This document shows, one piece after another, positions 10,974 to 62,353 of a stretch of DNA of 64,000 nucleotides. The notes under the pieces are model-generated. The model had not been told where the DNA came from. It saw nothing but the letters and a program-made list of their open reading frames with translations, and made no database searches. The stretch comes from Octopus sinensis (Eukaryota), in the NCBI RefSeq assembly GCF_006345805.1, contig NC_043001.1:39494001-39558000 (forward strand). Reading direction: 5' to 3'. Made by a program: the position numbers and the translations under genes. Positions within the stretch are counted from its first letter, which is position 1. Each line of letters starts with the position of its first letter.

Positions 10974-11009
<36 letters not shown>

Positions 11010-11012
<3 letters not shown>

Positions 11013-12015
11013 GGCAAGAAAAACCTCTCTATGGCAAATACCCAAAGAGAGCAAATAATGCAGATGTTGACAAAGCCCTGACCCATTAATGGCTAATGGC
11101 CTCTGGCTTAAAATCTGAAACAGAGGGGTTTATCATAGCAGCTCAAGATCAATGCCTACCAACAAGAAACTACCAGGCCAACATATTAAAGATCAGAAGC
11201 AGTCCAACGTGTCGTGTATGCAAGCAACAAAATGAAACCATTGACCATGTGGTCTCCAAGTGCAGTCTTCTAGCGCCTACAGAATATCTCAACAGGCACG
11301 ATAGAGCTGCACAATATATTCACTGGGTAATCTGTAAAAACCTGGATTTGCCCCATGAAAAAAACTGGTGGGAACACAAACCACCCCCAGTGCTTGAAAA
11401 TGACCACATCTCACTCCTCTGGAACTTCGCCATTCAAACTGACAGAAAGATAGATGCAAATAGGCCAGACATCATATTGAAAGACTTCAAACAAAGAACA
11501 TGCCTCCTCATTGATATGACTGTCCCAATCGATATAAACGTATCTGTCAAGACCTACCAAAAACTGAGCAAATATAAAGATCTTGAAATAGAAATCAGCA
11601 AAATGTGGAAGCTGAAGACTAAAACAATACCTGTTGTCATAGGTGCCCTGGGAATGATAGCAAAAGGGGCAGATAGCTACCTAACTCAGATACCAGGAAA
11701 CCCAAAAATGGCAGAAATTCAAAAGATAGTGCTCATGGGAACTGCTCATATCCTATGCAAAATACTTTCTATGTAATCTCAAGGTTTAAAACAAACATAA
11801 TTTTCGGTTTAAAAAAAAAAAAAAAAAATTTTCTTTTTTTAGACATTCATTAGTACAACACCCCACCCCCCAAATATATGGCACACTAGGCATAACAACA
11901 ACATGAACTTCCAACCCTGTTGTCTCTTGAGGTCTCTGGGTGAGACTTGGAGCCAACTTGTACAAATATAAAGCAAAAGTCAAACATAGAATAATAATAA
12001 TAATAATAATAATAA
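11010..12015 (+). mobile_element. R4/Dong-like LINE 3' end: CCHC zinc knuckle + restriction-like endonuclease, (AAT)n tail
   Basis: ORF 11096..11776: CRVC...ETIDHVVSKC, RHD, NRPDII, LLIDMTVP, KLSKYKDL, PVVIGALG. Confidence 0.9.
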
Positions 12016-12019
12016 TAGT

Positions 12020-13315: not shown

Positions 13316-13544
13316 AAATTTTGGCTGAAAGCCAGCAATTTCGTGGGAGTGAGTAAATCAATTACATCAACCCTGGTGCTCAACTAGTACTCATTTTATT
13401 GATCCCAAAAGGATGGAAGGCAAAATCAGCATTGATGGAATTTGAACTCAGAGCATAAACATAGATGAAATGTTGCTCAGCACTTTGCCTAGCATGGTAG
13501 TGATTCTATCAACTCACCGCTTTAACAACAACAACAACAACAAC

Positions 13545-13588
<44 letters not shown>

Positions 13589-13607
13589 TGATGATGATGA
13601 TGATTAA

Positions 13608-13659
<52 letters not shown>

Positions 13660-14559
13660 CCTTTTATTAGTCACAATTTCCGTGAGCATGTGTTGTATAG
13701 TCCCACAGATCTTCTTTAATTTAACATTAAAAATTAATAGAAATTCATGTCATTCATATTTCTTTCTTTCATATTTCCTTTCATCAATGGTAAGTGTTAA
13801 TTTACATTTCTTCCTTTTCTTCATGCATGTTGCAGTATTTCTGTTCTTTGACTTCGGTCCTTTGATACATGTTATAATATTTTGGTTCTTTGGTATAAAA
13901 AAGAAAAACACATAACTGTTACAGCGTTTTCGAAACTGATCTCGTTTTCTGCTTGGAAATTTACAAATTTTACATACACACATGAAGCACTTATTTTTTT
14001 CTCCAAGTTTAAAATGCGACATTGTTTTTGTTATATCTACATTCCACATAACTAAATACATAAAAACAGAACAACATGTATACACACACACACACACACA
14101 TACACACACACACACAATAACAAGCACACACAAACATACAGCCCATTAGCTTCCTCCTCTACACATGTCAAACAGAACAAACAAGCAACTGACAAGACAA
14201 CATGTGCTCAAAGAAATTACCAAAGTAGTTTGTTTACAAATCAGCTACACAAAACGAAAGAATACCAAAGCAATGTATAAGCACTGACATTCATAAGCAT
14301 CACGTCAGTTCTTTTTAAAACTGTTTCTTACTTTCACTCCAACCTCTGTGCTTGCAGCTCTTACCTCAGGATTTGAGCTAGCCATTGTGGCTTTTTGCTA
14401 AAGATTGATGGAAGCAACAGAGAATAATCTTTATCATCATTGTCAACATCAATATCATCATTATTAATTTAATTTGTATGAAGGCAAGAAAGAAGATCTG
14501 AGATTCAAACTGCATAGGCAAAGAAGCAGATGGCATCAAGCAGTAACAGTAACTAACCT

Positions 14560-15340
14560 AGATTGTACTGATGACCTGGCATTACTCACAAAGAGGACAG
14601 ATTAGGCACTGGAGGTGCTGAGCAGATTAGAGTGGGAATCGGGGAAGGTAGGATTGTACTGTAATGCAAACAAAACAGAGCTGCAAGTATTCAACCATGA
14701 AATGCTTGGGTCAGTGAAAGGGAGAGACGGTAAGTCACTGAAGGTAGTTGAAAATTTCAAATACCTTGGTGCATGGGCACAAATTACTGAAAAAGACATC
14801 GTAGCAAGGAAAGCTCCTGCCTGGAACACATGCCATAAATTGAGAAAGGTATGGAGTTCAAAGTTAGCAAGGAAATTGAAAGTGAGTTTGTTTCTGGCAA
14901 CAGTGGAGTCTGTTCTTCTATATGGGGCTAAAACATGGATGCTCACTAAAGCAGTGAAGATCCAGTTGGACGGTTGTTATACAAGGATTCTTAGAATGGT
15001 ACTCAATTTCTCCTGGAAGAGTCATACAACAAACGCCAACTTATACCAGGGACTATCAAAAGTAATATTGAAGGTACAGCATAGAAGGATGAGGCTAGCT
15101 GGACATTACATCAGACACATTGATGAAATTGCTAACAAGCTAGTGCTCAGGAAACCAATAGAAGGAAGAACCAAGAGAGGAAGGAGGAAAACGACCTATA
15201 TCTACAACTTACAGGAGGATACTGGTATGGAAGGGGTACAGGAGCTAAGGACCATTATGGAAGACGAGATGAATAGGGAAAATGTGTGGAAATACTCTTG
15301 GAGCATCCTATGGGATGACCTAGATGAAATGAGATAAATA
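14560..15340 (+). mobile_element. RTE-like LINE RT C-terminal fragment
   Basis: TDDLALL upstream of ORF 14615..15337: FKYLG, VESVLLYG, RMRLAGH. Confidence 0.85.
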
Positions 15341-15464
15341 CTGTGGGATTGGTGTTTGTTTAGTTTGTGAGTGACTTGTATAACCAGGGAGTGTGTATAT
15401 GTGTAGAGATGGAGATGTGTATGTGATTTGTATTTGTACTTACAGCATTCTTTACTAAAACCAA

Positions 15465-16060
15465 GGGGATCTTTTCCATCTCAGTCACAGATTTTTAATT
15501 AATTTTTTAACTAAACAGTTTGAAACTTCGAATACTGGTAGAATTTCTCACGTAGAACATGGTTTACTCTGAACATTTTTGACAAAATTTCATATTTTAG
15601 AAGTTATTTCATGCTAAAGTTGTCATATTTTGGTAATTTCAACCAATCAATTATGTGTATTCGGTTCAAGAAAGCTACTGCTGTTTATGATAGTAATTGA
15701 AGAGGAACAACTTCCGGGTCATCTCTACTAAATGTCATCATTCTGTTCAAAGAATCAACACCAAGAAGGAAGAAATATTTACATATATTTATTTGTTTAC
15801 CTGACATCGGTGTTTTATACACACATAAAGCATGCCAGTGTTTAAAAGACCTATTGAGCAATGAGTTTGCAGCAAGTTTTTTTGTTGTTGACGTATATGT
15901 AGTTTCAAAATGCCTTCTAAAATATGAAATTTTGTCCAAAACATTCAGAGTAAACCTTGTTCTACATGAGAAATTCTACCAGTATCCTAAGTTTCAAACT
16001 GCTTAGTTAAAAAAAAATTGATTGAAAAATCTGTGATTGAGATGGAATAAATCCAACCAA
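15465..16060. mobile_element. MITE-like element with about 140-bp imperfect terminal inverted repeats
   Basis: ...tttgaaacttcgaatactggtagaatttctcacgtagaac... mirrored by ...gttctacatgagaaattctaccagtatcctaagtttcaaa... Confidence 0.75.
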
Positions 16061-16837
16061 GGGAGACCCTAGATCTTTGAACAAAAGCCAGTGACCCTTA
16101 ACCACCACAAAAACTGATGACCTCGTACGTACCATTGTAATAACTATTCACGCTCAACAGCCATCTTACACAATGATTGAAATCTGTGCATACAGGGAAG
16201 CTCAAGTACACCTTTGAACAACAAACCTTACACAAATTCTGAATGAATATTGATGCTCAGTCATCTCAATTACTGTTACATACTGTGCACAAAGCTTTTT
16301 CCATTGAAAAATTCAAATGCAGAGGTTTTTTATTGCTGATTTTCCAGTTTGAGTCATTTGGAGTAGAAGAAGTTTTCGATGTTCAAATATTACCGACTAC
16401 CCTCCACTATTTTGGGCTTCCAAGCAAACGTGACAGATAGTTGAACTAACAGGAAAATTTTAGACATATTGGTCTATTTTAGTTTATAAAAATTATATTG
16501 TGCAATGAATATTAGTTTGTATGCTGAAAAGGATATCTTATAAATTCCCAATCCTGACCAAAAATATTAATCAATTTCAGAACTGTACCAAAGGAACTTG
16601 GGCAACAGCAGTGAACACCCAACAAGTGGAGATTGTCCAGATGCTAAACCAATTATGAAACACAAGAGAGCTGGTAACACCAGAAATGATAAAGTTTGCA
16701 ACACAGCTCCATGCTTCTCAGATATTTTTCTTTGGAAAATTGTACAAATGTGAATCAATTTAAATGTAATAAATCTTCTTATACACCCTCAGTGTATTTA
16801 CAACCTTTTTATTCCCGTCATATGTGTGTGTGTGTGT

Positions 16838-16909
<72 letters not shown>

Positions 16910-16989
16910 TATTTATGTGCTCATATACAAATACATTATATACAAATATTAATAATTACAACATTCCATTTAACACCTTACAATGGTAA

Positions 16990-17460
16990 ACATTCTGGTT
17001 TTTCTGTTTAACCTGAGCTTGAAACTGAAAAGCTGTTAGAAGAAACAAATAACACCATATTGTACATCCATATAGAATGTAACCAACTACTAAATGCCAT
17101 CAAGCTCATTATCTTCCCTCTAATGCTATCTTCAACAGGGCTATAGAGTACTGCAGCAAGAATCTATGAAGCAAGCAATCTAAAGAAAGAATAAAATATA
17201 TACCAGCACCATCTAACAATGATGCAAAACTCACAGTGAAAAGACCTTATGACATGGTATAATCCACTATATAACATTGCAGAATAAATCGTGGTTTTCT
17301 TTTTTTACATTTTCCTTCCTAAACAGAGAAAAATTTACCAAATGGTCATATATCCCAAAGGTTGTTCAGAAATATCAACACTAAAGTGAGCTACAGGTGT
17401 ACAAAAACATGTCTAATATTCTCAAGAACAACAATGCAAAGTTATTACAAGCTGAAGGTA
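16990..17460 (+). mobile_element. Penelope-like element fragment (post-RT region)
   Basis: Decayed frames similar to ORF 63510..63989 (WYNP, KVSY.C..NM motifs). Confidence 0.5.
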
Positions 17461-17804
17461 AAGAGAAGGGAGCAGGCTTGCAGTTGACAAAATATACATA
17501 CATTGGTAAAGAACACATTTATATTTTGGTTATGTATCTTACACTAGAAATTAGAACTCAATGAAGCAAATGCTTTAGTAAATTTAAGCAAATTACAGAA
17601 ATGACCTCATATATTTTGAGCTCTATTAAGTCATAAGCAACCAGTGATACAGTATAACAAAAAACAAATCTTTCCAAAACTGTTTAAGTTGAGTAATTGC
17701 ATTATTGTGTTAGATATGATTTTTAAAATGTACATATATTTCACATAAAAATTTTGAACAAAACTGCTGTTTGTGCTTTACAGAAACAAAAAGTAAAAAC
17801 TTAC

Positions 17805-18125
17805 ATTTTATGAGCATATCTAGTTTCTTTGAATAACTAACAATTCCACTTTTATCCAGTAAATATGCAACACACTGTAATTCCTTAAACCTCTTATGAA
17901 GAGTTAATGTCAATTTTGATGATAAAATGATCAGCTTTCCTGATTTGCTTGAATTGTTTGAAATATTCATTGTAGCATTTTCTTGTGCTCCATTTTCCCT
18001 TGTAATCAGCCAGAAAACTGAAAATCTAGGTTTGGCATCTTTAATAAGGCATTCATAACTTTTGTTCTGATTTTCCACAGGAACTGTGTCTGAAATAGCC
18101 TTGATTGTGACTGATTTTGGTAAAA
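17805..18125 (-). CDS. Ig-superfamily gene, Ig-like domain 3 exon (321 nt)
   Basis: TTTCAG|TT TTA CCA ... ATA AAA T|GTAAG, phase 1-1. Motifs YECLIKDAKP, VFW, SSKLTLTL, LQCVA (C2-set-like). Confidence 0.9.
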
Positions 18126-19576
18126 CTGAAATAGAAGAATTGACCAAAATTATATAAATAAATGAATGAATGTTTGCATTTTAGTCTGTATGTATCTATG
18201 TGTCTTTGTATATATGTATATCTGTTACATGCTTCCTTACATAAATATGTGTTGAAAAAATAACCATTAATTTACATCTATTTTTGCCGGACTGAGGTGA
18301 CAGCAATTTTATGTTGTTTATAAATTTTTTAGTTAGATGAAAAATACAGCAGTATTATCTTCATTGAAATTAATAATCAGAAGGCATTGTACTGATTGAG
18401 CTAACTTAACAAAATATCATATATATATGGACCAACTGGAAAGTAATGTACATAGAGTTTGCTACTCCTGTGCTTTCTCTTCAGATATGCAGATGATATC
18501 CTCAGGCTCACCACTGCTATTAGAGAGACTGACTATGTATCTTGCGCAATAAATGATATTGACAACTATGTAGACATCGAAATTAAACATTTTATTGATA
18601 TTGCAACTCAGTTTCTACAAGAAAACTGCCCACAAGGTCTATCATACATTACAGGTCTATCATACATTAGCAACAAGGGCCAAGGCTACAAAATATACAT
18701 TGATATTACAGATGAATAATAGATGTAGCAAGTAGAAAATAGAACCACTAATATAAATCTAGAAGACATTTGCCCAGGTTGCTGGGCAGTGAAACTGAAT
18801 CTGAAATTCTATGTTTGGGAAGCAAAATTCTTAACCAAGCAGCCACACCTGCACCTATGTTGTCTTATGAGGGATACTGTGGTTATTTTGTAGAAATTCT
18901 CAGTTGTCATCTTTGCCACAAGTATCTAAATCTTTTTCTCTACGGTCATATGCATCAGTTAACCTTTCTCTAGACCTATTCCCAATTATGGAATCTTTTT
19001 ACCCCATATCTTCCTTCTCCCAGTTCATTTCTGTGTCTTTGTGTGTAGTACATTCTCCACTAGGAAAGTTTTGGTGTGTACAATAACCCTTTTGTCTGAT
19101 TTACAGGAGGCACAAAGAATAACAGCTCCATCCAGCTTGCTACTTAATTGAAAACACTATAGAGAGAAAATCCAAACACGCTGAAATATGATGCTCCAGC
19201 ATGGCCCTAGCATTTGGCTGAAACCAGTAAAATATTAAAGATAAAAGATATATGTATATGTATAATATAAAATGCATGCATATGTAGGTGTGTATATTTT
19301 GTGCATATAAATGTATTGGTTTCTATGTGCACATGTTTGTATATTTATTTATAAGTGTATGTAAATATGCTATAAAATGCATAAGTGGTATACATATTTT
19401 GTGTACATAAATGTGTAATATATAAAACATGCCTATATATCTATCACTCTTTTATCTATAAATTTTAACCGTACTAGTTTCTATCATTAAACAAACATTA
19501 CAGTATACCATATATTCATTTATTAAGTACAATTTATCATCATCAATGATAAATAAATAAATATATATATATATAT

Positions 19577-19778
19577 AGGGTTCAAGAAGTCTTTGGACAG
19601 ATTCCTTCAAGAAATCCCGGATAAACCCCCTACACCCAGATATGTCTCTGTAAACAATAACTCTCTACTTGAGTGGGCCATAGTGCCCAAATTCTGACTT
19701 GAAAGACTTCACCAGGTGGTGCTATTAAGTTAGACATGGCCTGGGCCAATAATGGCCGAAACCTATCAAAGTATCAAA

Positions 19779-19782
<4 letters not shown>
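19577..19782 (+). mobile_element. CR1-type LINE extreme 3' end
   Basis: FKKSLDRFLQEIPDKP..NNNSLLEW, followed by a tail ending in (tatcaaag)2. Confidence 0.65.
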
Positions 19783-19821
<39 letters not shown>

Positions 19822-20099
19822 AGGTCTAGAGAAATATTAACTGATGCATATGACCATAGAGAGAAAGATTTAAATACTTGTGGCAAAGAAAATGATGGAT
19901 ATGTATAGTGATTAACTGAATGCTATTAATATTGTTTCAAAAAAACGTTATAGGATATAACGTCAGAGGTAGCCTATAGAAAGAGGAGGGATAAAGTAAA
20001 GGAAAACTAAATAAATGAGAAGTATATGACTATATATATATTAAATAAAACCATATAGACTAGGAAAAATATATATCTAGTGAATGTGAAGTATAAGAA

Positions 20100-21420
20100 G
20101 AAAATTAATGTTTAAATTATATATAATGATAGAAATCACTTATATGAACTAAAGGTGTGTTTCTGCCAACGTTTACATCGGTATGCACGCTCTATAACCG
20201 TCATTGCAAGGGGATTTTTAGAAAAAAGAATAAAAAATAATTCAGAATTACAGAGAAGACAGAATTCCTTGCCTTTGTCATAAGGTATCGAAATTGAGAG
20301 AATCAACCTATCTAAATTAAATTGTTTATTGCGATCTTTTAGATCCCAAATTAATTTACTAAGCCCTGTAACTGTTACGTTTATTCCTATCCCTAAATGT
20401 AGAGTAATGATTACAAATTCTTTAGAAGGACTCTAGACAAGCTCAAGTTAAGAATTAAGGTTGAAGTAAGGCCAGGTAACCCTATCAGATCCCTAATCGG
20501 TAGAACCTATCCTTTTAGCAGAACCCCCGTACTGATATGAACTGCATTGTATGTAGATTGAGCCCATAAACAAACTGAAAAGCTTGGAATGTAGTCTATA
20601 GTATAAGCTGTACAGAGGAACGGTGCAGAAACAAGACAACAGTATACGTAGGGGAGACAGCACAGAGCATAAGATAGCAGGTAAATGAGCATTGAAGGGA
20701 ACTTAAGGAAAAGAAGAGCTCATCGGTTCTGTACCAGCACACTGAGTAGGAACAATGGGGCTCACTCAACAACATAGAAGTTAAAATCTTGTCCACACAT
20801 AGAACAGAAGCAATATTTAGACAAATTACGGAAGCTACACACATAATAAAATATAAACTTAGCCTAAATAGAAAACTAGAATGGAACACTAACATACACT
20901 CTCACACATCACAACCTTTGACAGAATAAACTGATAATAATATGAAACTAATACAATACACAGATAAACAAATGGAATTTAATAATTATATACATAAACC
21001 GAATAAAATAAATTAAATTAATACAAAAAAAGAAAGAAATGAAAATGCAAGTAGATAAAAGGAAATGAATAAAGTAAATGAAAGTAAATTAAACAAACAT
21101 GATTAAACAGGGGATATTGATAATGCAGATACCATACACATTCCTACACACACATTTACTAAACATAGACTCACACAAGGATATACGCATATCCAAATAA
21201 AGACACATAGGACTACGAAATGACCGGTCGTTAGTAAGGAGAGATGAAAAAGAAAGAAGAAAGCAAAGGGCCACTGATGAGGTCACAGAAATGTGACAAA
21301 AGAACTCTGGCCAAAATACAATTACTATAAAATAAAGCTGAAGCAAGTGAACACCAAATATATAGTGCATGTGTTTTCATTGGCTAAATTGGCAACAGGG
21401 TCATCCCCAAATACAACAAC
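20100..21420 (+). mobile_element. Penelope-like element: GIY-YIG endonuclease relic plus terminal repeat with hammerhead
   Basis: NVVYSISC..TVYVGETAQSIR*QVNEH (about 20590-20700) and RQITEA..LNRKLEWN. Confidence 0.8.
21269..21312 (+). ncRNA. Minimal type I hammerhead motif (G12->A) in the 3' repeat of a Penelope-like element
   Basis: GGCCA CUGAUGA G GUCAC AGAAAU GUGAC AAAA GAA CUC^UGGCC. Confidence 0.65.
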
Positions 21421-22552
21421 CTTAGAGGTAGAAGGTAGTTTCTGTAACCTAAGTGATCTAATTAGCAGTGGAGAAGGGTACTCTTAAAGTGTAGTAGTTA
21501 GAATAAGAACTGGCTACAGAAAGTTTAGAGAGCTATTTCTTTGTTGGTTAGAAAGGGCCTCTTGCTCAGAGTGAATGGCAGATTTATGATGCTTGTTTAG
21601 GAATAGCTATACCACATGGCTATGAATGCAGAGGTCATGTAAAGGCTAGACAGAAATGAAGCTACTATATTCTGGTGGATGTACAATGTCAGTGTGATGT
21701 AGTGTGTAAGAGAGGAGACTGCACTGGCATGGTCATGTTAGTGCATATTTATGAGAAGAGCAGCATAAAGAAGTACCAATTGCTATATGTGGATGGAACC
21801 TGTGGAACAAATTGGTACAAAGGGGCCTTAAGACATTGAGCCTTACAGAGGATTTGCTGTGCTTGATAAGATCTGTTCATGTAGGTAAAATTGAGGCCCC
21901 AAAGAAATGTTTATACCTACACCCCTGCTCAGAATCTGTCTCTGACAAATATCTTCCCAATAACTCATCTTCCTAACACCCATTCCCTTCACTCAAGTTC
22001 ACCTCTCATTGCATTCCCTTCCCGTTTATCTCCCACTCTCCTATCAAATCTCATGAATTTCCTTGCACACAATCTACTTCTGATGAATATATTCCTTCTC
22101 AACAACATATCTTCTTCACATTCCCTCCCTCTACTTGCATTCATTTTTCTTTTGCACTCTCATGAACTTACCCACCCACTCACCTTATCCAGTCCTCCTA
22201 CTACCTACCTGTAACTTGAGGGTACCCCACAACACATATTCTTCACCATCTTTTCTCTCTCTTCTATCCGATGATGATGTATATTTATGTATATTTATTG
22301 ATGTGTATAAGTGTGTGCAACTTAGTGTTTGTTTCTTACCACTTTACAACCATTGTAGATATGTTTACTTTCCAGTCACTTAGCAGTTTGGTAAAAAGAG
22401 ACCAATAAAAATAAGAGACTCAAAATACTGGGGTCCACATACTCGACTAAACCCTGCAAGTAATGCCCTAGTATGGTCACAGTCTAATGACTGAAATAAA
22501 TAAAGGAATAATAGAATAAAATCACACAACTGTGCAAAAAATAATTACTTAC

Positions 22553-22864
22553 CAAATACTGTAATACTATACTTGCTTGTATGGAAACCGCCTTTGCAAA
22601 TAATGTCCATGTTGTCTTCAGCTAAACTAATGCTGGTTATACTCAATGTACAGCTTGAATGTTGGCAACTAGTTTCTTGGCGTTTACCAAAATATTTAAC
22701 AATATTTTGGTTCAATGATCCAACGTATTTAGCAATAACTGTTCCATTTCCAGTATACCAAATTACTGTAGTACCAGTACCTATTGTTTTACATTTCAAT
22801 GTGAATTTTTTATCCTTTATGGCATTTGGTGTTTCAGAACTTGGGTAAAGATTCCTATTATCAT
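22553..22864 (-). CDS. Ig-superfamily gene, Ig-like domain 2 exon (312 nt)
   Basis: TTTTAG|AT GAT ... GTA TTT G|GTAAG, phase 1-1. Motifs FTLKC, VIWY, TLSITSISLAEDNMDIIC. Confidence 0.9.
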
Positions 22865-23149
22865 CTAAAAGATAAATTATTACAAAATAAATCAAGTATT
22901 ATACACCAAATGATGGAATATTTTAAGTATAATAAAACGAGTCTGTTTGTTTCTATTCCATTCCAGCTGAAAATATGAAATAAGTATTATGTGTAACAAA
23001 AATTTTTCTTTTATTCTGCAGAAGAATATAAAGCTAAATCTACTGAAGCACATTAGAAGATATTTTAAGGAGGAATGGGTTAAGTAGAATGATTGTGAGC
23101 AAGAATCATAGTTAAATATATGGCAAGTAAGTTTGTCAAATGATACCAC

Positions 23150-23187
<38 letters not shown>

Positions 23188-23217
23188 TATATATATTATA
23201 TATATATATATATATAT

Positions 23218-23592
23218 AATGATAAATCTCAGAGCGAGTTTAAAACAGTAGCGGTAACACATCGTGATGCATATTGCCATTTGAATATGGCTAACCCATA
23301 AGGGTGGATGCTACTGTAGTTTGTAACCCCAGGAAGATATCTCCTCCAGCTGGCTATAGACACACTATCTGTGTCCTCTCAGTATTTGTGAAGGGGAGTC
23401 ATCGTCCCCGTCTTCAACACATGATACACACGTACCCGAGTTTCAAGGTGTTTACCTTTCATCAGCGTGTGACAATCATGGTTGTCGATGAGAAGTCAGA
23501 TCCCTTCACAAATACATATACTTTTTCCAGTGTCGATTTGACACTGATATTGAAAAAGTGAAATCAAACAATGATAAATCTCAGAGCGAGTT
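23218..23592 (-). mobile_element. Retrozyme-like 352-bp unit bounded by 23-bp direct repeats
   Basis: aatgataaatctcagagcgagtt at 23218-23240 and 23570-23592. Contains the hammerhead and other hairpins, and no recognisable protein domain. Confidence 0.6.
23427..23471 (-). ncRNA. Type I hammerhead ribozyme, intact catalytic core
   Basis: Minus strand: CACACG CUGAUGA AAGGU AAAC ACCUU GAAAC UCGG GUA^CGUGUG. Helix I 6 bp, helix II 5 bp, short helix III, GUA cleavage triplet. Confidence 0.85.
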
Positions 23593-24464
23593 ATAAGGGA
23601 TGCTGGAGATATGTCATTTTTGCCATTGCTCCCTTAATATAATTATATACATATGTATATTATTATTAATTTAGTATATATTTATATATATATATATATA
23701 TCAATAATACAGTGATTGTTTCTTATCAGGAACAAAATGTTTAATAGGACTGCTATAGAAGTGCTCAATTGAAAGAGACAAATATATCAAACTAAGGTTA
23801 TAGAACAAACAAATGCAAGGTCATCCACAAACATTTCATAATTCGAACATTTAATCATAGAATATACATATAAACATCCCGCAAGATGGAACATAATTCA
23901 TCTGTATAAGCATATAAGAAAGTGCAAGAAAAAAGTTCATCATGGTTTAGAGTTAATACTTTAGCGATTCAGAGAAATATATTTTTTTTAAAAACATTAC
24001 AACACCTAGAAAGTAAAAATATATAGGTATATAAAAATATATAAAAATATATAGGAAGCATGTAAAAAATATATAATATATATCATGTAAATAAAATAAA
24101 AGTTCATCGTTTAGAAATCTTATAAAATTACTATTCAAGTAAGAGAAGCCTTATAGTTAAAAAAGAGGAAACCATATTTACTTAATCCCTATGGCCATTT
24201 CAGAGGTGTATTATTATGTTTAAAGCACTAGGGTGCATCAAGATAATACCTCCTTCCTCAGGGGAAAAAAATATAGAGAGACAGACATCATCGCGTACCA
24301 GGCTAACACAATATTGTGTGCTTTCCTATTGAAGCATGCATGCTTGGATAAGCCCAAAAGAAGGAATTAAAGCAGTAAAAAAATTTTCTTTTAAAGCAGT
24401 AGAGAAATAAGGCGGTAAAAAAAAAAATTTTAATTTTTTAAAATTTAAAAAAATATATATATAT

Positions 24465-25275
24465 ATACACTGGACCTGGAGGGACTGCAATCCCAGAGGC
24501 ACAATCAGTGCAAGACCTGGGTATTTACATGAGTGATGATGCAGCCTTTCATGTGCATGTCACTAAATTGGCAATGAAATGTAGGTGGCTGACCAGATGG
24601 ATTCTTAGAACCTTCAGAACAAGAGATCAGGAGACCATGATGGTCCTCTGGAGGACACTTGTCCTAAGCCACTTTGACTATTGCTCTCAGCTATGGTCAC
24701 CATCCAGTGTCAAGTTAATCACAGAACTTGAGGCGATCCAACGAAGCTACATGAAGAAGATAGCTTCTGTGCAGCATATAAGCTATTGGGAAAGACTCAA
24801 GAGATTGAGACTCTATTCCTTAGAGCGTAGGCGAGAAAAGATATGCCATAGTATACATCTGGAAGATCCTAGAAGGACTTGTCCCAAACTTGGCATCGAG
24901 AGTACACAAATGCCAGAACTGGGCGCCACTGCGTGGTGCCAAGGACTCCAAATTTGCCATCAAGATGTAGGACAAGATACTGTGATAGCCTGGCTTCTGA
25001 GGCCCACAGCTCTTCAATATCCTCCCGAAGAAGAAGAACCTAAGACCTGCATGGGGTGGATGCAGATGTCTTTAAAATGAAACTGGATCTCTTCTTGTCA
25101 GGTATCCCTGATGGACCAACTTCACAGCAGGAGGTGCAGATGAGGGCAGCTGCATCGAACTCTCTCATGCACCAAATGGCAATTGCTAAAAAGCATTTGT
25201 GAAGTAAAATCATGTAGCAACACCAAATGGTGGTGCCCCAGCATGGCCACAGCTAGTGAGCTGAAACTAGATAAA
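24465..25275 (+). mobile_element. CR1-clade LINE 3' fragment
   Basis: ORF 24508..25080: QDLGIYMS, WILRTF, SHFDYCSQLWSP, YWERLKRLRLYSLERRR. Confidence 0.9.
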
Positions 25276-25454
25276 TAAAAAAAATAAATATATATATATA
25301 ATAAAGCAGTAAAAAAAGTAGTTAAGAAAAAAGTAAATAAATAAATAAAAAAATAAAAAATGGGTGTATTAAATTAAATTAAGTTCAATTAAATTAAATC
25401 GAATTAAATTAAATTGAACCTCCATGGTTTCAAATCCTGTAAAAGCTAAATTAT

Positions 25455-26030
25455 TTATTTTCTACAACTTATTTTATTCCTATAGACTTTTAAGAATGTA
25501 GAAGAAAATTTATGGATGCAAAAGGGAATCACGTCCGTAAATTTATTCAGAATGTGCAGTCCATAACACCTAAGGATGGTAAGGGATTCCTTTATGCATA
25601 GCTTACACTTGTTAATATTTCCCTTGAAATTTGGGGTTTTAGAAATAATGGACCATTCTAGATAATAATTCTTATTATTTTTCTTCAAGTTGTGTATATG
25701 GGATGCAAGTGTAGTTGAGTTACAGTATTTGTCGCTAGCAAAAGAGCTCATATGTGATCTATATCTCGCCTTAAAGTCTATCGTGCTACCTATATAAAAT
25801 TTATTTAGCTTATCCTCGTCCTTGACTACACATTTATATATAACGTTGGTAACTAGACAGGAACCATCTAAAGGACATCTGATACCCAGATTTTCATGGG
25901 GGAGTAAGATGAGCAGCCATCCTTCAAGACATCTTTTATCTTGCCATAGATTTCCACTGCTCTATTACATTTCAAAAAGAGGAAATTCATGATGGCCTGT
26001 GCTTCAACTTTATCGAAAATCTGGTATTAA
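25455..26030 (-). mobile_element. Penelope-like GIY-YIG endonuclease fragment
   Basis: RCPLDGSCLVTNVIYKCVV..FYIGSTIDFKARYRSHMSSF..LASHIH..CKLC. Confidence 0.85.
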
Positions 26031-26649
26031 GTAAAGACTTGAACAGGCCTTAAGATGTTTACACAAACACAAGACTTTAAAAAAAATTAATGAAGGTTCT
26101 GGATAACCAATGCCCTCCACACAATTGAATATGAAAGGACAGATAAAAGGACATATACTAAACCCACACAATTCATGGTCCTCTGTAACAAACCTAGCAT
26201 ATACTTTATCAAATGTATACTACAAAACATAAACAACACAGTCAAGAAAATGAATATATGAACAACTAAAGACTTTACACTACAAGCACTACACTTGAAT
26301 TCCAAGCTGCCATAAACAAGGAGCTCTGTGAGAACACTAACATCAACCTAGACCTAATTAGACTAAGCCTTGACTTTAGACAGCAACTGATGTGAATTTG
26401 AGGTCAAAACAACACCCCATTTCTCCTGAACCCTTACTTACAATAACTAACTCCACTCAGTTCTCTTCAAACTAGCCAAATGGATGAGCCCTGAAGAAAC
26501 CATATGAAAATCATGCCAATTCGCATCTGCAACTGCCCATAATCTGTGCAGTGAAACACGTATATGTCATAAAGACCACAATAATATGCAGTATGAAATT
26601 GTAAAATAAGAGGAAATAAATTTTGAGGATGCACAAGTCTCCATGTCCT

Positions 26650-27850
26650 ATATCATTATAATTATTGCTTGAAAAACTAGAAGTAGTTGATAGCTTCCAT
26701 TACTTAAGTGACCAAGTCAGTAGTGGGGGTGGGTGCACTGAAAGTGTAGTTGCAAGAATAAGAATAGCCTGGGCAAAGTTCAGAGAGCTCTTACCTCTGC
26801 TGGTGATAAAGGGCCTCTCGCTCAGAGTAAAAGGTAGAAAGTATGACGCATGTGTACGAATAGCCATGCTACATGGCACTGAAACATGGGCCGTGACTGC
26901 TGAGGACATACATAAGCTTGCAAGGAATGAAGCTAGTATGCTCCACTGGATTTATAATGTCAGTGTGCATATTTGACAGAGTGTAAGTACCTTGAGAGAA
27001 TAGTTGGACATAAGAAGCATCAGATGTGGTGTGCAAGAGAGACGACTGTGCTGGTATGGTCATGTGGCGAGAATGGATGAGGATAGCTGAGTGAAAAAGT
27101 GCCACACTCTAGTGGTGGAGGGAACTTGTGGAAGAGGTAGACCCAGGAAGACCTGGGATGAGGTGGTGAAGCACGACCTTCGAACATTAGGCTTCACCAA
27201 GGCAATGACTAGTGACCAAGACCTTTGGAACTATACTGTGCTTGAGAAGACCTGGCAAACCAAGTGAGACCATAACATGTGGCCTATGCCAGGGGTGTAA
27301 CCACCCCACTTATGCATACCTTTCCTTTATTGGAAACTAAACTCTGCTTGTAAAGACCTGTTGATGCAAGTGAAATCGAAATCAAATTCGATGACGGGCA
27401 TCTGTGCTAGTTGAGCGCTAAGAGCACCATCCAAGCATGACCGTTGCCAGAGCAGCTGACTAACTTCCATGCCAGTGGCGCATAAAAAGCACCATTTGAG
27501 CGTGATCGTTACCAGCATAGCCTTACTGACACTTGTGCTAATGGTATGTGAAAAAATATTCAAGCAAGTTTGTTGCCAGTGCCGCTGGACTGGCTCCTGT
27601 GCAGGTGGCACGTAAGACACCATTTGAGCATGGCCGTTGCCAGTACTGCCTGACTGGCCCTCGTGCTGGTGACATGTAAAAGCATCCACTACACTCTCAG
27701 AGTGATTGGCATTAGGAAGGGCATCTAGCTGTTGAAACTGCCAGATCAGATTGGAGCCTGGTGCACCCATCTGGTTCGCCAGTCCTCTGTCAAATCGTCC
27801 AACCCATACCAGCATGGAAAGCGGACGTTAAACGATGATGATGATGATAT
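26650..27850 (+). mobile_element. RTE LINE 3' end with tandem-subrepeat 3' UTR and (GAT)n tail; solo 3' UTR copies near 28440-28740, 45320-45545(-), 48075-48360, 51800-52110, 60800-61148
   Basis: ORF 26665..26976 (RIRIAWAKFRELLPLL..LHGTETW), then 63-65 bp units and catggaaagcggacgttaaac(gat)n. Confidence 0.88.
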
Positions 27851-27960
27851 ACACATGTATGTATGTATATATATATGTGTGCGTGTGTGTTTGTGTGTGT
27901 ATATATATATATATATGTATATATATATTATTTGTATATGTGTGTGTGCACACACGTGTT

Positions 27961-27991
<31 letters not shown>

Positions 27992-28322
27992 GTATATATA
28001 TATATATAAAACTAATATATATAATTATATATATATTATATATATAGATTCAGATGAATATGGTACTTAAGTTGAGGCACCAGAATGAAGTACAGTATTA
28101 TCCATACAATTTCAAAATAAGGTAATTAAAATCAAAATCAGCAACAAGGATATCCAGAGGTAATGTAGTAAGATCGTTTCATGCAACTCCATTTAATTGA
28201 GCAATGCAATCATTACATCAATTTAAAATGCAAAGCAATCCTCAGCTGCACAAAGACATAGAATTTAATTAAATTAGAACAGATGGATACATTAATATAA
28301 TTATGACCAAAATCTCCAAACA

Positions 28323-28436
28323 GTTAAGAAAATAGACAAAGAACATGCTGTCTCACACTCCAGCATAGAAGTTACAGCATATAGAAACTTCTATGCTGGA
28401 GTGTGAGACAGCATGTTCTTTGTCTATCTTCTTAAC
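28323..28436. repeat. Near-perfect inverted repeat: 51-bp arms (1 mismatch), 12-nt loop
   Basis: 28323-28373 versus the reverse complement of 28386-28436, compared base by base. Confidence 0.95.
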
Positions 28437-29699
28437 TTCTTGGTGATTTTAGGTATGGATGATGACCATCTGACTGGTTCCCATACTGGTGGCACGTAAA
28501 AAGCACTATCCGAACGTGATGAATGCCAGGCCTGCCTGACTGGCTCCTGTGCTGATGACATGTAAAAAACACCCACTACACTCTCGGAGTGGTTGGCATT
28601 AGGGAGAGCATCAAGCTGTAGAAACATTGCCAGATCAAATTGGAGCCTGGTGCAGCCACTAGCTCTCCAGACCTCAGTCAAACCGTCCAAATCATGCAAG
28701 CATGGAAAACGGACATTAAATGATGATGATGATGATGAATAAATTCTTTTATTTTTTTATTTGTTTCAGTCATTTGACTACGGCCATGCTGGAGCACTAA
28801 ATTTTTTTTTATTTTATCAGTGGCCAGCATATAAAAGGTATTAAGGTGAAATCATATATATAATTATAATTAAGAGCATAGAAAATAATTCTAGCTTATA
28901 TGCTGAAAATAGATGCTAAATTGTTTCACCTCTTTAAAAATCACAAAGTTACACACATGTTGACGTTGAGAGAGCTTATAGGCTAGAAATTTTCAGCATA
29001 TAGGCTAGAAATTTTTCTATGCCCTTAATTATGTGTTCAGTCTCCATGTCAGTTTTGACATAGTTTCTATATCTGCACATATATATATATCATAGCTGCA
29101 CCCTTGTTACATGAGAAAAACTATTTCCAAGAAAACTTACTGAAATGCTTCATTATTGTTGCCATGTGATACCCTTATATGACTTTTAAGCCCAGTCAAG
29201 CTTTTACACATTTTATTACCTACTAGACAATTGTGCTGGCTGGCAGGAGAAACAGGTGCCACCATATGCACTCTCTTAACATGTCTTTTTAGACGTCCAA
29301 CTATGTATGTATGTATGTATGTATGTATGTATGTATGTATGTATGTATGTATGTATGTATGTATGTGAGATAACAGTTTCACTTTAATAGTTTCAGTATT
29401 AATAGTGAAACTATTGAAGTGAAAGTATCTGACATTATATTAGAGAGATGTTATTGTTTCACTTTTGACATGTATTACTGAAATAGTGGAAGAAATAAGA
29501 GATTGTTCTGGGCTCGTATTAGGCAAGAAGTTGAAAATTGTTTTTGGTCCATGACACTACTTGGACCCTAAGTAAAATATGTGTAAAATTTGAATGAAAT
29601 TGGTTGTGTAGTTCTCGAGTTTTAGGGATTCACACAGATAGACATGCCTCCTCATCTTTATATATATAGAAGATATAGATAAATAGACAGACAGATAGA

Positions 29700-29925
29700 T
29701 ATATAGATAGACACATACATACATACATACATACATACATACATACATACATACATGCATGCATGCATACATACATTCATACATACATACATACAACACA
29801 TGCATACACATACATACATACATACATACATACATACATACATACATACATACATACATACATACAATACATACATACATACATACATACATACATACAT
29901 ACATACATACATACATACATACATA
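29700..29925. repeat. (CATA)n microsatellite; many other (TA)n, (CA)n, (CATA)n, (AAT)n and (GAT)n tracts, e.g. 2595-2690, 13525-13660, 16822-16908, 30545-30650, 39765-39890, 50905-51015
   Basis: Direct inspection. Confidence 0.98.
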
Positions 29926-30242
29926 ACATTTCTGAGCCTTTTAGAATAATTAATAATTTTGTGAATTTCATCAAACCAAGAACAATTCATGGATCACATA
30001 CTAGCAACTAAATCTCTCTTCTGCAAATCAAACAAATAATCTCAGCCATAATATTGCTATTTCAATATTACTGGAATGATATAAGAAGGAAATTTATAGA
30101 TATTAAAATATTATTGACAATATTTGTTGGTTACAACTATCAGATTTTATGACTTGACTGAAACCCAAAGTTAGTGTTTAGAGAAATATATTTTGTTCAT
30201 GGTCAGGAAAATATGAAAATACGATTACTATATGGTACTTAC

Positions 30243-30518
30243 TATATAGTGGTATTGCCTGAAATTTTATCTCTTTGTCAGTGCCCTGACAAGTTAATGT
30301 TAAATCACTATTTGAAAGAAGAGTGACGTTTAAAATGTTGGCTTTTTCAGAAAGCACATTTGCTTCAAATTCATTATTTTTGATAGGTGACCAGCCAGGA
30401 CCACTCATTTTCTGTGTTCTGATTTGCCAGTATTCAACTTTTTGCTGTGCAAGACATTCAAGAGCTGTTGGTTGCTTTTTCCTGACAAATTTTACCATGT
30501 CAATTTCTTTGAGAGAAA
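30243..30518 (-). CDS. Ig-superfamily gene, Ig-like domain 1 exon (276 nt)
   Basis: Pyrimidine tract CAG|TT TCT CTC ... CTA TAT A|GTAAG, phase 1-1. Peptide has LEC...W...LTLTC (Ig B/C/F strand pattern). Confidence 0.9.
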
Positions 30519-58620: not shown

Positions 58621-59462
58621 CATAGAAAGGAAGTAGGTAGTTGTTGGCAACATTGACTCCACAGATCAGTCTCATTGGTGGTCCTGTCACATTGTTGTTA
58701 CATTATGGTCCTTGTAGGATGTCATTATTAGTGGCCTTACAATTAGAAATGATTTGCTTACCAAAATCGAAATATAATAATCTGTCCTTATTGGACTCCT
58801 ACAAATCTATCAATCAAGAGAAATTCCTTGCTTTACATAAAAATGTTTTGAAATTTGCATCTTAATTTTTGACAACTTATCAATGTGAGCAGTTTTCTTT
58901 TTTTTTTTTTTCAAATTGAATTATGCAAAAAATCGTGTATGTACCAGACCTTCAAAAACCAGAGTAATGAACTAAGAATAGCAGTTGCTTCAGAGGCATG
59001 TGATATTCCTAAACTTTCAAAAACAATAAAAATTAAAATAGCAGTTCCATCCTTCTCACTAAACAAAAGGTTAGTTAGCTTTGATAAAATTATCAATTTA
59101 TCAAAATTAGTTTAGATATGTCATTTACATATAATGTTATTTAGGAATCGAGGTAAGTTTTCAAAATTAAATTTGGTTTGTGCTTGGTTGTTATGATTTT
59201 CTGTTTGGTTTTGGTTCCCCACTACCACTTGACAATCAGCGTTGGTTTGTTTACCTCCACAGAAGCTAGTAATAGATACTGTTTGTTTTTGCAATGTTTA
59301 ATTTGATTTTTCTCCCTCCCTTGTCAACACACGTGTTGATAAGTGAGTGGGTAGGGAAGGACGATAACTGATAAGCCAATGATGTGAAAGTAGCTCCTGT
59401 TAGTCTTCTTAACACTGACTGATACTCAAAGAAAGAATGAATCAAGATATTTGCAAACTTAC

Positions 59463-59504
59463 CTCCGGGTTTCTTTGAAATGCTGACATGAGCATCATCC
59501 ATGT
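59463..59504 (-). CDS. 42-nt micro-exon Y2: (D)MDDAHVSISKKPG
   Basis: TTCTTTTTTGAATTTCTTAAAG| ... GGA G|GTAAGT. Phase 1-1, open. Confidence 0.78.
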
Positions 59505-59754
59505 CTTTAAGAAATTCAAAAAAGAATTAAAAACAGCTACAACTAACATTTATATTATGTTAATGTTGTATTGATACTACCATAATAAACACTAATGAGA
59601 TAAAATCAAAAACACTTACACACACATACATGCATATACACATATGTTAACAGACAAAGAGTGAGTGATACATTTCATTATTGTTAGCTTTCTGTTTTTA
59701 TTTAAGATTATTTCTAAGAACATGTTGTGTACTAACAATATTGATTCTACTTAC

Positions 59755-59808
59755 CCAGTTCTTCCATACAAAGATATTCTGGTTCATTAACTTCAGCATG
59801 TTGTTCTT
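59755..59808 (-). CDS. 54-nt micro-exon X2: (E)EQHAEVNEPEYLCMEEL
   Basis: TTTCTCGATGCTGTAG| ... CTG G|GTAAGT. Phase 1-1. PEYLCM is identical to X1 at protein level despite synonymous codon changes. Confidence 0.8.
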
Positions 59809-61144
59809 CTACAGCATCGAGAAATTAAATGAAATATGGGTACATTTATTATTTGGAGAGGATGTTCTAAATATTTTGTAAGTGGCACAGATAGTAGCAT
59901 GTATATATATATATATATATATATTTTATATAGAAACATGAATTTAGAAACAGAAGTTATCTAAATCCAGTAGAAGTTCATGTACAATAGAGGTCCTTTA
60001 TCCTCTCATTCACATATTGTAAAAAGATAAATATTACCTAAGAAATTTATTTGGTATGAACAAAAGGACTAAGGCAATTTTGGTTAATGTGCCATTTCAA
60101 AGTTAGAGTTTAGAAAAAGGGTTCCTCAGTAAAATGGCACTAAAAATTCTATTTCATAAGCAAAGTGCTATTAATTAGGTAAAAGTAGGATTTGATCTCA
60201 GAATGCGCTGACACTAAAGTTGATTATGTCAATATTTGGTAGGGTATTTCCATCACTTCAATATTCAACTGATATTTAAAGGTGACAATGTTATCATTAA
60301 GAGATACCATTAACAAATACCTTCACAGAAATAAAAATTCCTTCTTAAATTACTTTCTTGTTAGGGTAATTCATAAGCAGGAGTGACTTTGAATACTCAA
60401 CAACAACAGTTGATCACATTCCCCATAGCAAATTTCTTCCATACTTTGTGTTTCATGTCTAGGCAAACATCCACAGAATTCGATATTAGTTACATGATTA
60501 TTTGGTTTATTCATATGAATAAAGGTTTAAAAATATATGCTTATGAACTGCAATATTAAGGGTAAAGTTTAACAAAAAGGTAAAATATCAGAGTTAAATA
60601 GGAATGTCTGCAAGAATTGTATTGCATATGCTATGAAATTTTAACATTTTCAAAGTTTTGCAGGTGTAGCTGTGTGGTTCATTTCCACTGTGAAACACCT
60701 TATGCAAGTGTAATAGTGTAATTTACTACAGCCCTGAGCCAATGACAAGAAGCTGAAAGAAAACCATTATATATCAATAAAAAAAGAATATATATACATA
60801 TAGATGAGCATGATCATTGCCAGAGCAGCTCACTGGCTTCCGTGCTGGTGGCATGTAAAAAGCACCATTTGAGTGTGATCATTACCAGTGTCGCCTTACT
60901 GGCACGTGAACAAAATATTTGAGCAAGGTAATTGCCAGTGCCGCTGGACTGGCCTTTGTGCCAGTGGCACATAAAAGCACCCACTACACTCTCACAGTGG
61001 TTGGCGTTAGGAAGTGCATTCAGCTGTAGAAACTCTGCCAGATCAGATTGGAGCCTGGTGCAGCCATCTGGTTTGCCAGTCCTCAGTCAAATCATCCAAC
61101 CCATGCTAGCATGGAAAGCGGATGTTAAACAATGATGATGATGA

Positions 61145-61200
<56 letters not shown>

Positions 61201-61443
61201 GTCTGTCTGTCTGCCATAGCAGTTAGGCAAAAGAAATCAATAGAATAAGTACTTGAGTAGATTTGATGGACTAAACCCTTCAAGACAGTACTTCTGCATG
61301 GCCAAAGTACCATGACTGAAACAAGTAAAAAATAAAAGACATATATAAAGCTTCCTATTGCTCAAAGAAAGAATGAACCAAGGCATTTGCTAACTCTTGC
61401 TCTAATGAATGTAATGTTATTAATGGATTGCTTTTGTACTTAC

Positions 61444-61485
61444 CACCAGAGTTCCTTGAAACATTAACATAAACACTGTCCTTGT
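61444..61485 (-). CDS. 42-nt micro-exon Y1: (D)KDSVYVNVSRNSG
   Basis: T-rich tract TTTTAATTTTTTAAAG| ... GGT G|GTAAGT. Phase 1-1, open, and paralogous to 59463-59504. Confidence 0.8.
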
Positions 61486-61702
61486 CTTTAAAAAATTAAA
61501 AATAGAATTAAATACATGGTTATAAATAAATACTATGTTAATATTGTGCAGATACTACCATAATAAACACACTCACATACAAACACATGCATTGATAGGC
61601 AAAATTTCCAGTGTGATGCATTTCATAATTGTTAGCTTTCTGTCTTTATTCAAGATGATTTCTAAGATCATGCTGTGTACTAACAATATTGACAGTTATT
61701 AC

Positions 61703-61756
61703 CTGGTACTTTCATGCATAAGTATTCAGGATAACTTACTTTAGCATGTTGCTCTT
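61703..61756 (-). CDS. 54-nt micro-exon X1: (E)EQHAKVSYPEYLCMKVP
   Basis: TTTTTGATACTTTAG| ... CCA G|GTAATA. Phase 1-1, open, and paralogous to 59755-59808. Confidence 0.8.
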
Positions 61757-62353
61757 CTAAAGTATCAAAAACAAGGTAACACCAATGTCCTCTCAACAAT
61801 TAGTCAGAGATGATTTTTAAAATGAGAATATCTGAAATAAGCTTGACTGCTCTCACAAATGAGAAAGCTAAAAATGAACCCAACCACTCTCAAAAATTAA
61901 GTAAAAGAAAAACCAGAAAAATAATCCAGAATCCTTGTCTGGTACCAGATTAATCCCAAAATCTACTCAGTTCATGCTAGTCATGAGACCAAACATTCCT
62001 GAATCCATCCAGTAGTTCTTGAGATATCTTGTCCATGGACAAACAAACAAGCAAACAAATGCTACTAAAAACAATACCTCTGCCTTTGCTAAGGCAGAGG
62101 TAATTAGGCATATTCGTTGTTTGATATTGCATAGAAAGAAGTGGAAAAAAAAATTATATATTTTTTTGTATAAACATGCATAGATGCAGCCCTTGATGTG
62201 TGGTAACAATCTTGCTATCTAACCACATGGCTCCAGTTCAGTCCCACTCCATTTTCTTCTATAGCCTCAGTTCAACCAAAACCTCATGTAGCATGAATTA
62301 TTGGCAAATTGTTTCTTCTGTCTTCCTTTTCTCTTGGACTTTCCTCTGTCTCC

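Follow-up and report, generated by a model that had tools for sequence, protein, structure and literature searches.

The 64,000-nucleotide stretch of Octopus sinensis DNA analyzed here (C5:39,494,001-39,558,000 of a 2.72 Gb assembly; hereafter, the window) carries near its right end four micro-exons on the minus strand, which belong to an immunoglobulin (Ig) domain gene lying mostly to the right of the window. Positions written +N use window numbering extended to the right, past 64,000 nt. In the order of transcription, the exons are A1 (61703-61756, 54 nt, encoding EEQHAKVSYPEYLCMKVP), B1 (61444-61485, 42 nt, DKDSVYVNVSRNSG), A2 (59755-59808, 54 nt, EEQHAEVNEPEYLCMEEL), and B2 (59463-59504, 42 nt, DMDDAHVSISKKPG). 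All four are intact and of phase 1-1, with AG immediately before and GT immediately after; the donor is gtaagt at B1, A2, and B2, as at the A and B exons of most other full units described below, and a weaker gtaata at A1. The first-pass annotation of this DNA had proposed four GT-AG micro-exons on the minus strand, and these match base for base, the spliced peptide reading exactly EEQHAKVSYPEYLCMKVP-DKDSVYVNVSRNSG-EEQHAEVNEPEYLCMEEL-DMDDAHVSISKKPG. The synonymous codon differences within PEYLCM between A1 and A2 are as given there, and the motif tyrosine of YVNV, reported as lost in the second copy, is indeed replaced by histidine in B2 (HVSI), with the same histidine in the Octopus bimaculoides ortholog. 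The four-exon pattern is far beyond chance because the two A+B pairs align with each other across ~360 nt, intron included, have at least 40 genomic homologs, and include two exons (B1 and A2) that occur letter for letter in a RefSeq protein.

Each A+B pair is the core of a longer repeat unit. Unit u1 (61359..61823, minus strand) consists of an upstream flank, A1, a 217-nt intron, B1, and a downstream flank, and it is homologous along its whole length to the genomic units just mentioned; u2 (59423..59891, minus strand) is built in the same way from A2, a 250-nt intron, and B2. A third unit in the window (~55781-56010, minus strand) is dead. Its B exon is deleted with the splice sites kept (aaag-ATTG-gtaagt), the 3' part of the intron is kept, and in place of the A half there is a repeat resembling a short interspersed nuclear element (SINE). 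By position it is the counterpart of exon B3 (DLDDVYVNVSKKPD), which is present in O. bimaculoides and deleted in O. sinensis. The two copies implied by the first-pass annotation are therefore an undercount: the array comprises about nine units, including the dead one, and continues past the right window edge. On the minus strand, unit 1 has its A exon at +85463..85404 (AEREQDAEDSEPRYLSVKHP) and its B exon at +85161..85120 (DTDDIYVNVLRKPD), unit 2 at +81710..81651 and +81410..81369, unit 3 at +75644..75585 and +75344..75303, and unit 4 at +73602..73543 and +73298..73257, with a pseudo-A exon at +74.6 kb that has lost its donor and has no B partner. Unit 5 has an A exon (+67860..67801) and no B exon, and unit 6 pairs an A' exon at +67302, whose donor GT has become GA, with a B exon at +67016..66975 (DMDDVFVSVSRKPD, also referred to as B0). 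Units 7 and 8 are u1 and u2, and unit 9 is the dead unit without its B exon.

Every A and B cassette exon is of phase 1-1 and of a length divisible by three, AG and GT are retained at both exons in all full units, and the consensus peptides are EEQxAExSxPxYLxM for A and xMDxxYVNVSxKPx for B. The A exon is 60 nt long elsewhere (gaAG followed by CTGTGGAAGAACAA...) and 54 nt long in A1 and A2, both of which have lost the acceptor of the 60-nt form and share a replacement AG 6 nt downstream, in frame. This shifted acceptor is used by RefSeq models in both O. sinensis and O. bimaculoides, and its occurrence in A1 and A2 alike would be difficult to account for if the exon had not been in use after the shift. 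The two exons were duplicated jointly, as one ~500-nt block. At least 40 copies of a ~340-nt unit, with 65-81% identity, are found in the genome at C5 38.5-39.9 Mb, at C5 115.62-115.69 Mb, and on unplaced scaffolds, and they are confined to same-strand arrays downstream of Ig and transmembrane (TM) exons in the two clusters and their scaffolds. Units u1 and u2 are old, being 75% identical to each other and 70-78% identical to all other units. The ERE-type units are mutually 89-99% identical, array units 2 and 3 reaching 99%, and number five to six in O. sinensis versus two in O. bimaculoides, so part of the amplification is about as young as the species split, or younger. The earlier proposal that the tail grows by cassette duplication agrees well with these ~9 units, some of them 99% identical, whose number differs between sister species. 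Cassettes have been both gained, as the near-identical neighbors and unequal counts show, and lost, as the dead exons show.

The host gene extends over ~100 kb of the minus strand, from ~+162 kb to +59.4 kb, and is ordered as Ig exons, one TM exon, a juxtamembrane part, and then the alternating A and B exons. Ig1 lies at +161.9 kb and Ig2 at +149.4 kb; the Ig exons at +131.3, +128.8, +123.5, and +118.7 kb match the protein of LOC115212116 (P0002) at 100% and that at +121.2 kb at 98.8%. The TM exon at +114.8 kb (+114794..+114690, minus strand) reads EITEVTLGTIIGCFVGIVLLITLVLLIY NSHKIR (GTIIGCFVGIVLLITLVLLIY, then NSHKIR). There is a single hydrophobic span with basic residues next to it and the tail C-terminal, as in a type I protein, and the RefSeq models start with a hydrophobic leader such as MEFKLLYWKHFLTVQCLCVCL; the LOC115212116 model takes its 5' exons from a site that precedes the local Ig exons by ~330 kb. 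The Pfam families Ig_3, I-set, and C2-set_2 score above cut-off in the O. bimaculoides ortholog (P0020) and in a paralog (P0022), and the Ig exons within the window give Ig hits as well. The suggestion that the micro-exons form a receptor's cytoplasmic tail, along with the advice to look for Ig and TM exons to the right of the window, is thereby borne out, as both kinds of exon are found there on the same strand and 5' of the cassettes. With Ig and TM exons preceding them in the same-strand gene, the cassettes are taken to form the cytoplasmic tail of a type I protein of the immunoglobulin superfamily (IgSF), the cytoplasmic side being predicted by the positive-inside rule. The host gene is one of several paralogs of the same build in a tandem cluster.

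The gene is already represented in RefSeq by LOC115212116 (1220 residues), an uncharacterized protein that contains ...EREQDAEDNEPKYLPMKHP DMDDVFVSVSRKPD DKDSVYVNVSRNSG EEQHAEVNEPEYLCMEEL... and for which a signaling role is plausible. The model includes array units 1-5, B6, B1, and A2 and leaves out A'6, A1, and B2; among the four micro-exons, only A1 and B2 are missed by the public O. sinensis annotation. B1 and A2 are very likely in use. B2 is likely in use although it lacks the tyrosine, and its ortholog (DMDDAHFNISRKPD) is used in O. bimaculoides RefSeq isoforms; the use of A1 is uncertain. The proposal that frame-neutral exons could be recombined by alternative splicing receives support from predicted RefSeq isoforms of the ortholog and of the neighboring paralog, in which single cassettes are skipped. 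In O. bimaculoides, one 14-residue B exon is missing from isoform X5 of LOC106879981, and isoforms X1-X8 of LOC106874069, the neighboring paralog, have 14-, 20-, and 14-residue cassettes independently present or absent, along with two alternative 3' ends. Annotated models also contain B-B and A-A neighbors. The paper on SPLASH (PMC10370119), checked for evidence of octopus splicing, does not touch this locus.

The O. bimaculoides ortholog of the host gene is LOC106879981 (P0003/P0020), with a gene range of 258 kb. It ends ...DMDGVYVNVSKNSG EEQHAEVNEPEYFCVEDL DMDDAHFNISRKPD DLDDVYVNVSKKPD, followed by ATMFYTSTH and a stop or by GYQ and a stop. The ortholog of B1 (DMDGVYVNVSKNSG) keeps YVNV, and no ortholog of A1 was found in any O. 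bimaculoides model. In the neighboring paralog, two of the three orthologous A exons have YLxM in both species. Cassette peptides occur in RefSeq proteins of three Octopus annotations, and an HMMER search with the tail against 1.84 billion representatives returned only Octopus proteins (O. sinensis, O. vulgaris, and O. bimaculoides); candidate relatives outside Octopus proved to be ankyrin or low-complexity false matches.

Within the coding frames, u1 and u2 differ at a proportion of synonymous sites (pS) of 0.67 (12/17.8) and of nonsynonymous sites (pN) of 0.23, giving a dN/dS of ~0.16 (synonymous versus nonsynonymous, Fisher p=0.0012). Exon indels are multiples of three only, with none in exon B, and none of nine diverse units has an in-frame stop versus 5.2 units expected (P=0.001) from a neutral simulation calibrated on intron divergence, which also supplied the codon expectations given below. 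Positions Q3, A5, P10, and L13 of the A exon and S10 of the B exon are invariant in the 13-unit set. Among paralogous units, identity is 71.6% in exon A, 73.8% in exon B, and 76-83% in parts of the intron. Synonymous divergence exceeds intron divergence both between u1 and u2 (0.67 vs 0.25, p=3e-4) and in 67 of 78 paralogous unit pairs (mean among paralogous units, 0.36 vs 0.21), an excess that may be due in part to the low number of sites and to bias of the method. Constraint on the cassette introns, considered as a reason for their alignment among paralogs, was rejected, since their identity between species (92.9%) matches that of the background (93.2%, p=0.62). A conserved RNA structure in the cassette intron, such as an editing or splicing helix, was rejected as well, with no favorable covariation (RNAalifold on 13 units, -9.5 kcal/mol over 510 columns, z=-2.6 versus column shuffles).

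A1 and A2 both carry YLCM. The YxxM form occurs in 21 of 26 A-type motifs of annotated family tails, with M at +3 in 11 of the 13 genomic units; B1 (YVNV) fits YxN and B2 (HVSI) does not, N standing at +2 in 10 of 13 B exons. The tyrosine is retained in 12 of 13 A exons and in the same fraction of B exons, and the motif context is acidic (e.g., EDSEPRYLPM and DMDDVYVNV). YxxM is preferred by the Src homology 2 (SH2) domains of p85 and YxN by that of Grb2, and a p85-type iSH2 gene is present in the O. sinensis genome. A match to the consensus of the immunoreceptor tyrosine-based inhibitory motif (ITIM) had also been claimed. It applies to B1 (SVYVNV), but most units have D or G at position -2 (DDVYVSV, DGTYINV, DGAYVNI), and the only other fitting B unit reads ISYVNV, so the ITIM fit is not a feature of the family. 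As for the immunoreceptor tyrosine-based activation motif (ITAM), the eight residues between YxxM and YxxV fit, but +3 is M and V/I rather than L/I, and isoforms split the units.

Taken together, we consider it probable that the four micro-exons represent units 7 and 8 in a ~9-cassette array that encodes the cytoplasmic tail of an Octopus-restricted type I protein with putative SH2 docking sites. Engagement of the ectodomain would lead to phosphorylation of the acidic-context tyrosine motifs, and the phosphorylated motifs would dock SH2 proteins, p85/PI3K-type at YxxM and Grb2-type at YxN, with one pair (Y-x11-Y) per A+B unit. Such p85-type and Grb2-type docking is a reasonable reading of the motifs. 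If the motifs do serve as SH2 docking sites, cassette number and splice choice would set the number and kind of sites on the tail.

Several observations weigh against this reading. The ortholog of A2 (EEQHAEVNEPEYFCVEDL) has EYFCV in place of YLCM, which goes against the conservation of YxxM in related species by which the first-pass annotation itself had proposed to judge the idea, and B2 is without tyrosine in both species. In the neighboring paralog, the A exon of unit -43.5k has changed tyrosine to cysteine in O. sinensis (PKCLEM vs PKYLEM), and another A exon, intact in O. sinensis, is dead in O. bimaculoides through a 5-nt deletion and loss of its splice sites (O. sinensis C5:39,443,000-39,451,000 compared with 80,500-86,600 of O. 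bimaculoides stretch L047). The evidence for splicing consists of predicted RefSeq models only, and the LOC115212116 model is almost certainly chimeric: it maps over 764 kb (C5:39,226,000-39,990,000), crossing other paralogs, with 5' Ig exons at 39.96-39.99 Mb, body and tail at 39.553-39.625 Mb, and a 300-kb jump after A2 to tail exons at 39.226-39.254 Mb. The chimera arises because repeated cassettes mislead automatic annotation, and gene counts and expression estimates for the cluster therefore need manual curation. Searches with the (G/D)YQ-stop pattern, the O. bimaculoides ends ATMFYTSTH and GKISQNFWDDLIYV, and the terminal-exon DNA of the paralog turned up no stop-bearing last exon in the stretch from B2 to the next gene; reading through the B2 donor gives 65 extra residues and then a stop. 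The codon data add to these points. Ten codons are kept in at least eight of nine units versus 6.3 expected, which is weak (P=0.08), and ten codons are hypervariable versus 3.4 expected (P=0.001). Between O. sinensis and O. bimaculoides, the cassettes of the neighboring paralog, standing in for A1-B2, have exons that are 90.7% identical versus 93.2% for background non-coding DNA (p=0.13), and the exon changes are mostly amino-acid replacements. The earlier claim of purifying selection thus holds for the comparison of u1 with u2, but the between-species comparison shows no net purifying selection on the nucleotides of the neighboring paralog's cassettes. The frame, stop, and indel results together with the between-species turnover indicate that selection preserves frames, splice sites, and motif cores, whereas the remaining peptide changes at the neutral rate or faster. 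Short linear motifs in disordered tails and fast-evolving receptor families typically behave in this way.

Some of these points feed an alternative that we regard as rather unlikely overall, namely that the four exons, or some of them, are remnants in decay at the array's 3' end, with A1 above all no longer spliced in and the frames of u1 intact by chance. A1 appears in no annotated protein retrieved from either species, neither A1 nor O. sinensis B2 was found in any protein of the three length classes of a 5.8-billion-cluster database, and queries of the same database with 113-aa and 253-aa tails returned no fragment spanning an A1-B1 or A2-B2 junction. The models of both species splice B0 straight to B1, past A1. 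The A1 donor departs from the usual gtaagt, u1 is the most diverged unit with an upstream flank only 56% identical to that of u2, the tyrosine is lost from B2, and the array has dead neighbors in the third window unit, the A' exon at +67.3 kb, and the pseudo-A exon at +74.6 kb. A stop-free frame of 18 codons is, moreover, not significant by itself. Decay is nevertheless at odds with the presence of B1 and A2 in RefSeq models of two species and of B2 in those of one, with the u1-u2 dN/dS of 0.16, and with A1 itself, which retains its acceptor, donor, frame, and PEYLCM and has the in-frame replacement acceptor in common with A2.

Other proposals accept the cytoplasmic tail and differ on the use of the tyrosines. 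Each A+B unit might be an ITAM-like module of paired tyrosines (Y-x11-Y) instead of offering p85 and Grb2 a site each. Its partner would be a protein with tandem SH2 domains, for example a kinase of the Syk/Shark type, a phosphatase of the SHP2/Csw type, or p85 binding through both of its SH2 domains. The tyrosines are 12 residues apart in every unit because A ends six residues past its tyrosine and B has five residues before its own; A and B were duplicated as one block, and ITAMs and the Y740/Y751 pair of PDGFR have comparable spacing. We consider this distinctly improbable, since the +3 residues differ from the L/I of canonical ITAMs and since the single skipping of A or B in RefSeq isoforms and the occurrence of B-B and A-A neighbors break the pairing. 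It is less probable still that the motifs act unphosphorylated as YxxPhi sorting signals for AP-2 in the endocytosis of a scavenger or adhesion receptor. YLCM, YLPM, YVNV, YVSV, and YINV all fit Y-x-x-(L/I/M/V/F), but one such signal is normally enough, which makes 10-20 repeats hard to explain, and conservation extends beyond YxxPhi to N at +2, S at +4, KP at +6/+7, the acidic run before the tyrosine, and EEQxAE; acidic residues upstream of the tyrosine are typical of tyrosine-kinase substrates. Finally, a non-coding dispersed repeat with accidental AG...GT-bounded frames, which the repetition of the entire ~500-nt unit, introns too, at least 40 times and the exons' being no better conserved than the introns might suggest, is effectively refuted by the restriction of the copies to same-strand arrays downstream of Ig and TM exons, by the absence of stops and of indels other than multiples of three in the exons, and by the RefSeq peptides of three Octopus annotations.

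The arrangement of a putative SH2-docking tail built from cassettes can be compared with several known systems. PECAM-1 (CD31) is, like the octopus gene, a multi-Ig type I protein whose tail is split over very short exons, spread in PECAM-1 over exons 9-16. In PECAM-1, tyrosine-bearing tail exons are included or skipped, which changes signaling and binding, and the octopus cassettes are skipped in predicted models. However, no PECAM-1 tail exon is a tandem copy of another, and the tail has two ITIM-type tyrosines, whereas the octopus A/B pair is reiterated to ~9 and its count varies between sister species; no homology of the octopus tail to PECAM-1 was detected in the HMMER search of 1.84 billion representatives. 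A functional tyrosine is carried by the 19-residue exon 14 of PECAM-1 (PMC2132561).

Nephrin/Sns/Kirre-type proteins share with the octopus gene many C2-type Ig domains and a tyrosine-rich tail, which in Nephrin/Sns/Kirre binds SH2 adaptors. The CD80-like C2-set Pfam matches of the octopus family are weak (22.6-26 bits versus a cut-off of 21). Unlike Nephrin/Sns/Kirre, the family shows no fibronectin III domain and no YDxV motifs, is restricted to Octopus, and is tandemly amplified. Repeated YxxM and YxN motifs in a disordered acidic context, as in the octopus tail, are found in CD28/ICOS/CD19-type tails and in IRS/Gab/DOS-type docking proteins. Those systems have few sites in ordinary exons, or carry them on cytosolic adaptors, whereas the octopus motifs are known from sequence alone, and the YxxM of octopus A2 is not conserved in the sister species. 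The vertebrate CEACAM1/CEA, Siglec/CD22, FCRL, and LILR/KIR families, like the octopus family, form tandem clusters with fast-evolving Ig ectodomains, tyrosine motifs on small exons, long and short alternative tails, and gain or loss of motifs and genes between close species. These vertebrate clusters use ITIMs, ITAMs, and immunoreceptor tyrosine-based switch motifs (ITSMs), whereas the octopus tails mainly have YxxM and YxN, with an ITIM fit that is not conserved. Since no orthology of the octopus family was detectable beyond Octopus itself, its likeness to the vertebrate clusters is one of analogy, not of membership.

A literature search that included the locus names found nothing on this octopus family, and families of tyrosine-motif immune-type or recognition receptors are not known to have been described in cephalopods. 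Only tentatively, the clusters at 39 Mb and 115.6 Mb of C5 may be read as Octopus-specific, fast-diversifying recognition receptors whose signaling output is tuned during evolution by amplification and loss of the two-exon tyrosine cassette and within individual cells by combinatorial skipping of the frame-neutral micro-exons. Were this so, the recognition could be immune, self/non-self, or neuronal, and the tails would be a cytoplasmic counterpart of ectodomain diversification. If the tails signal, they offer a natural series of one to ~10 docking units, with Tyr-to-His and Tyr-to-Cys variants and with live and dead exons in sister species, which could be used to study the effect of docking-site number and order on the output of a receptor and the origin of signaling diversity by micro-exon duplication.

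The tail cassettes differ in kind between paralogs, since P0010, an O. vulgaris protein of the same cluster, has a tail unlike A/B, with four (D/E)LYAKVNKP repeats and the endings NYAELEF and TIYADLIL, the latter fitting the ITSM-type TxYxx(V/I/L). In the second cluster (C5:115,623,737-115,693,721), the cassette matches on the two strands mirror each other around ~115,658,730, and the units paired at 115623737/115693721, 115626192/115691261, and 115635736/115681893 show no or almost no differences; either this second receptor cluster contains a large inverted duplication or the symmetry is an assembly artifact.

The next paralog downstream on the minus strand, whose body occupies 2823..30518 of the window, is the ortholog of O. 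bimaculoides LOC106874069 (85% identity). Its Ig exons are at 30518-30244, 22864-22554, 18125-17806, 8481-8237, 6423-~6164, and 4183-3876, and its TM exon is at ~2823-2930; the Ig-like open reading frames (ORFs) of the window (30518..3876) are therefore downstream of the micro-exons and part of this gene, whose own A/B tail lies to the left of the window. A 100-N assembly gap (51170-51269) lies in the intergenic DNA between the two receptor genes, and the orthologous O. bimaculoides alignment resumes at the edge of this gap, position 8757 of stretch L047 matching 51169 of the window.

The spacer between u1 and u2 contains, outside the cassette, a SINE-like insertion with a (TA)n run (60789..61206, minus strand), an element present in at least 40 genomic copies with 85-90% identity on many chromosomes, and a related element sits where the A half of the dead unit was (~56020-56200). 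Long (TGTATGTA)n-type microsatellites at 29550-30010 and 2590-2710 translate as YVCMYVCM..., and their tblastn matches to the YLCM peptide are spurious and unrelated to the cassettes. An ORF at 25455-25961 (minus strand) has a GIY-YIG nuclease domain of the kind found in Penelope-like elements (Pfam E=1e-4, just over the cut-off), an ORF of 363 aa at 45674-46765 (plus strand) resembles reverse transcriptases and contains an FIDD motif, and fragments of reverse-transcriptase-like or endonuclease-like ORFs are scattered elsewhere in the window.

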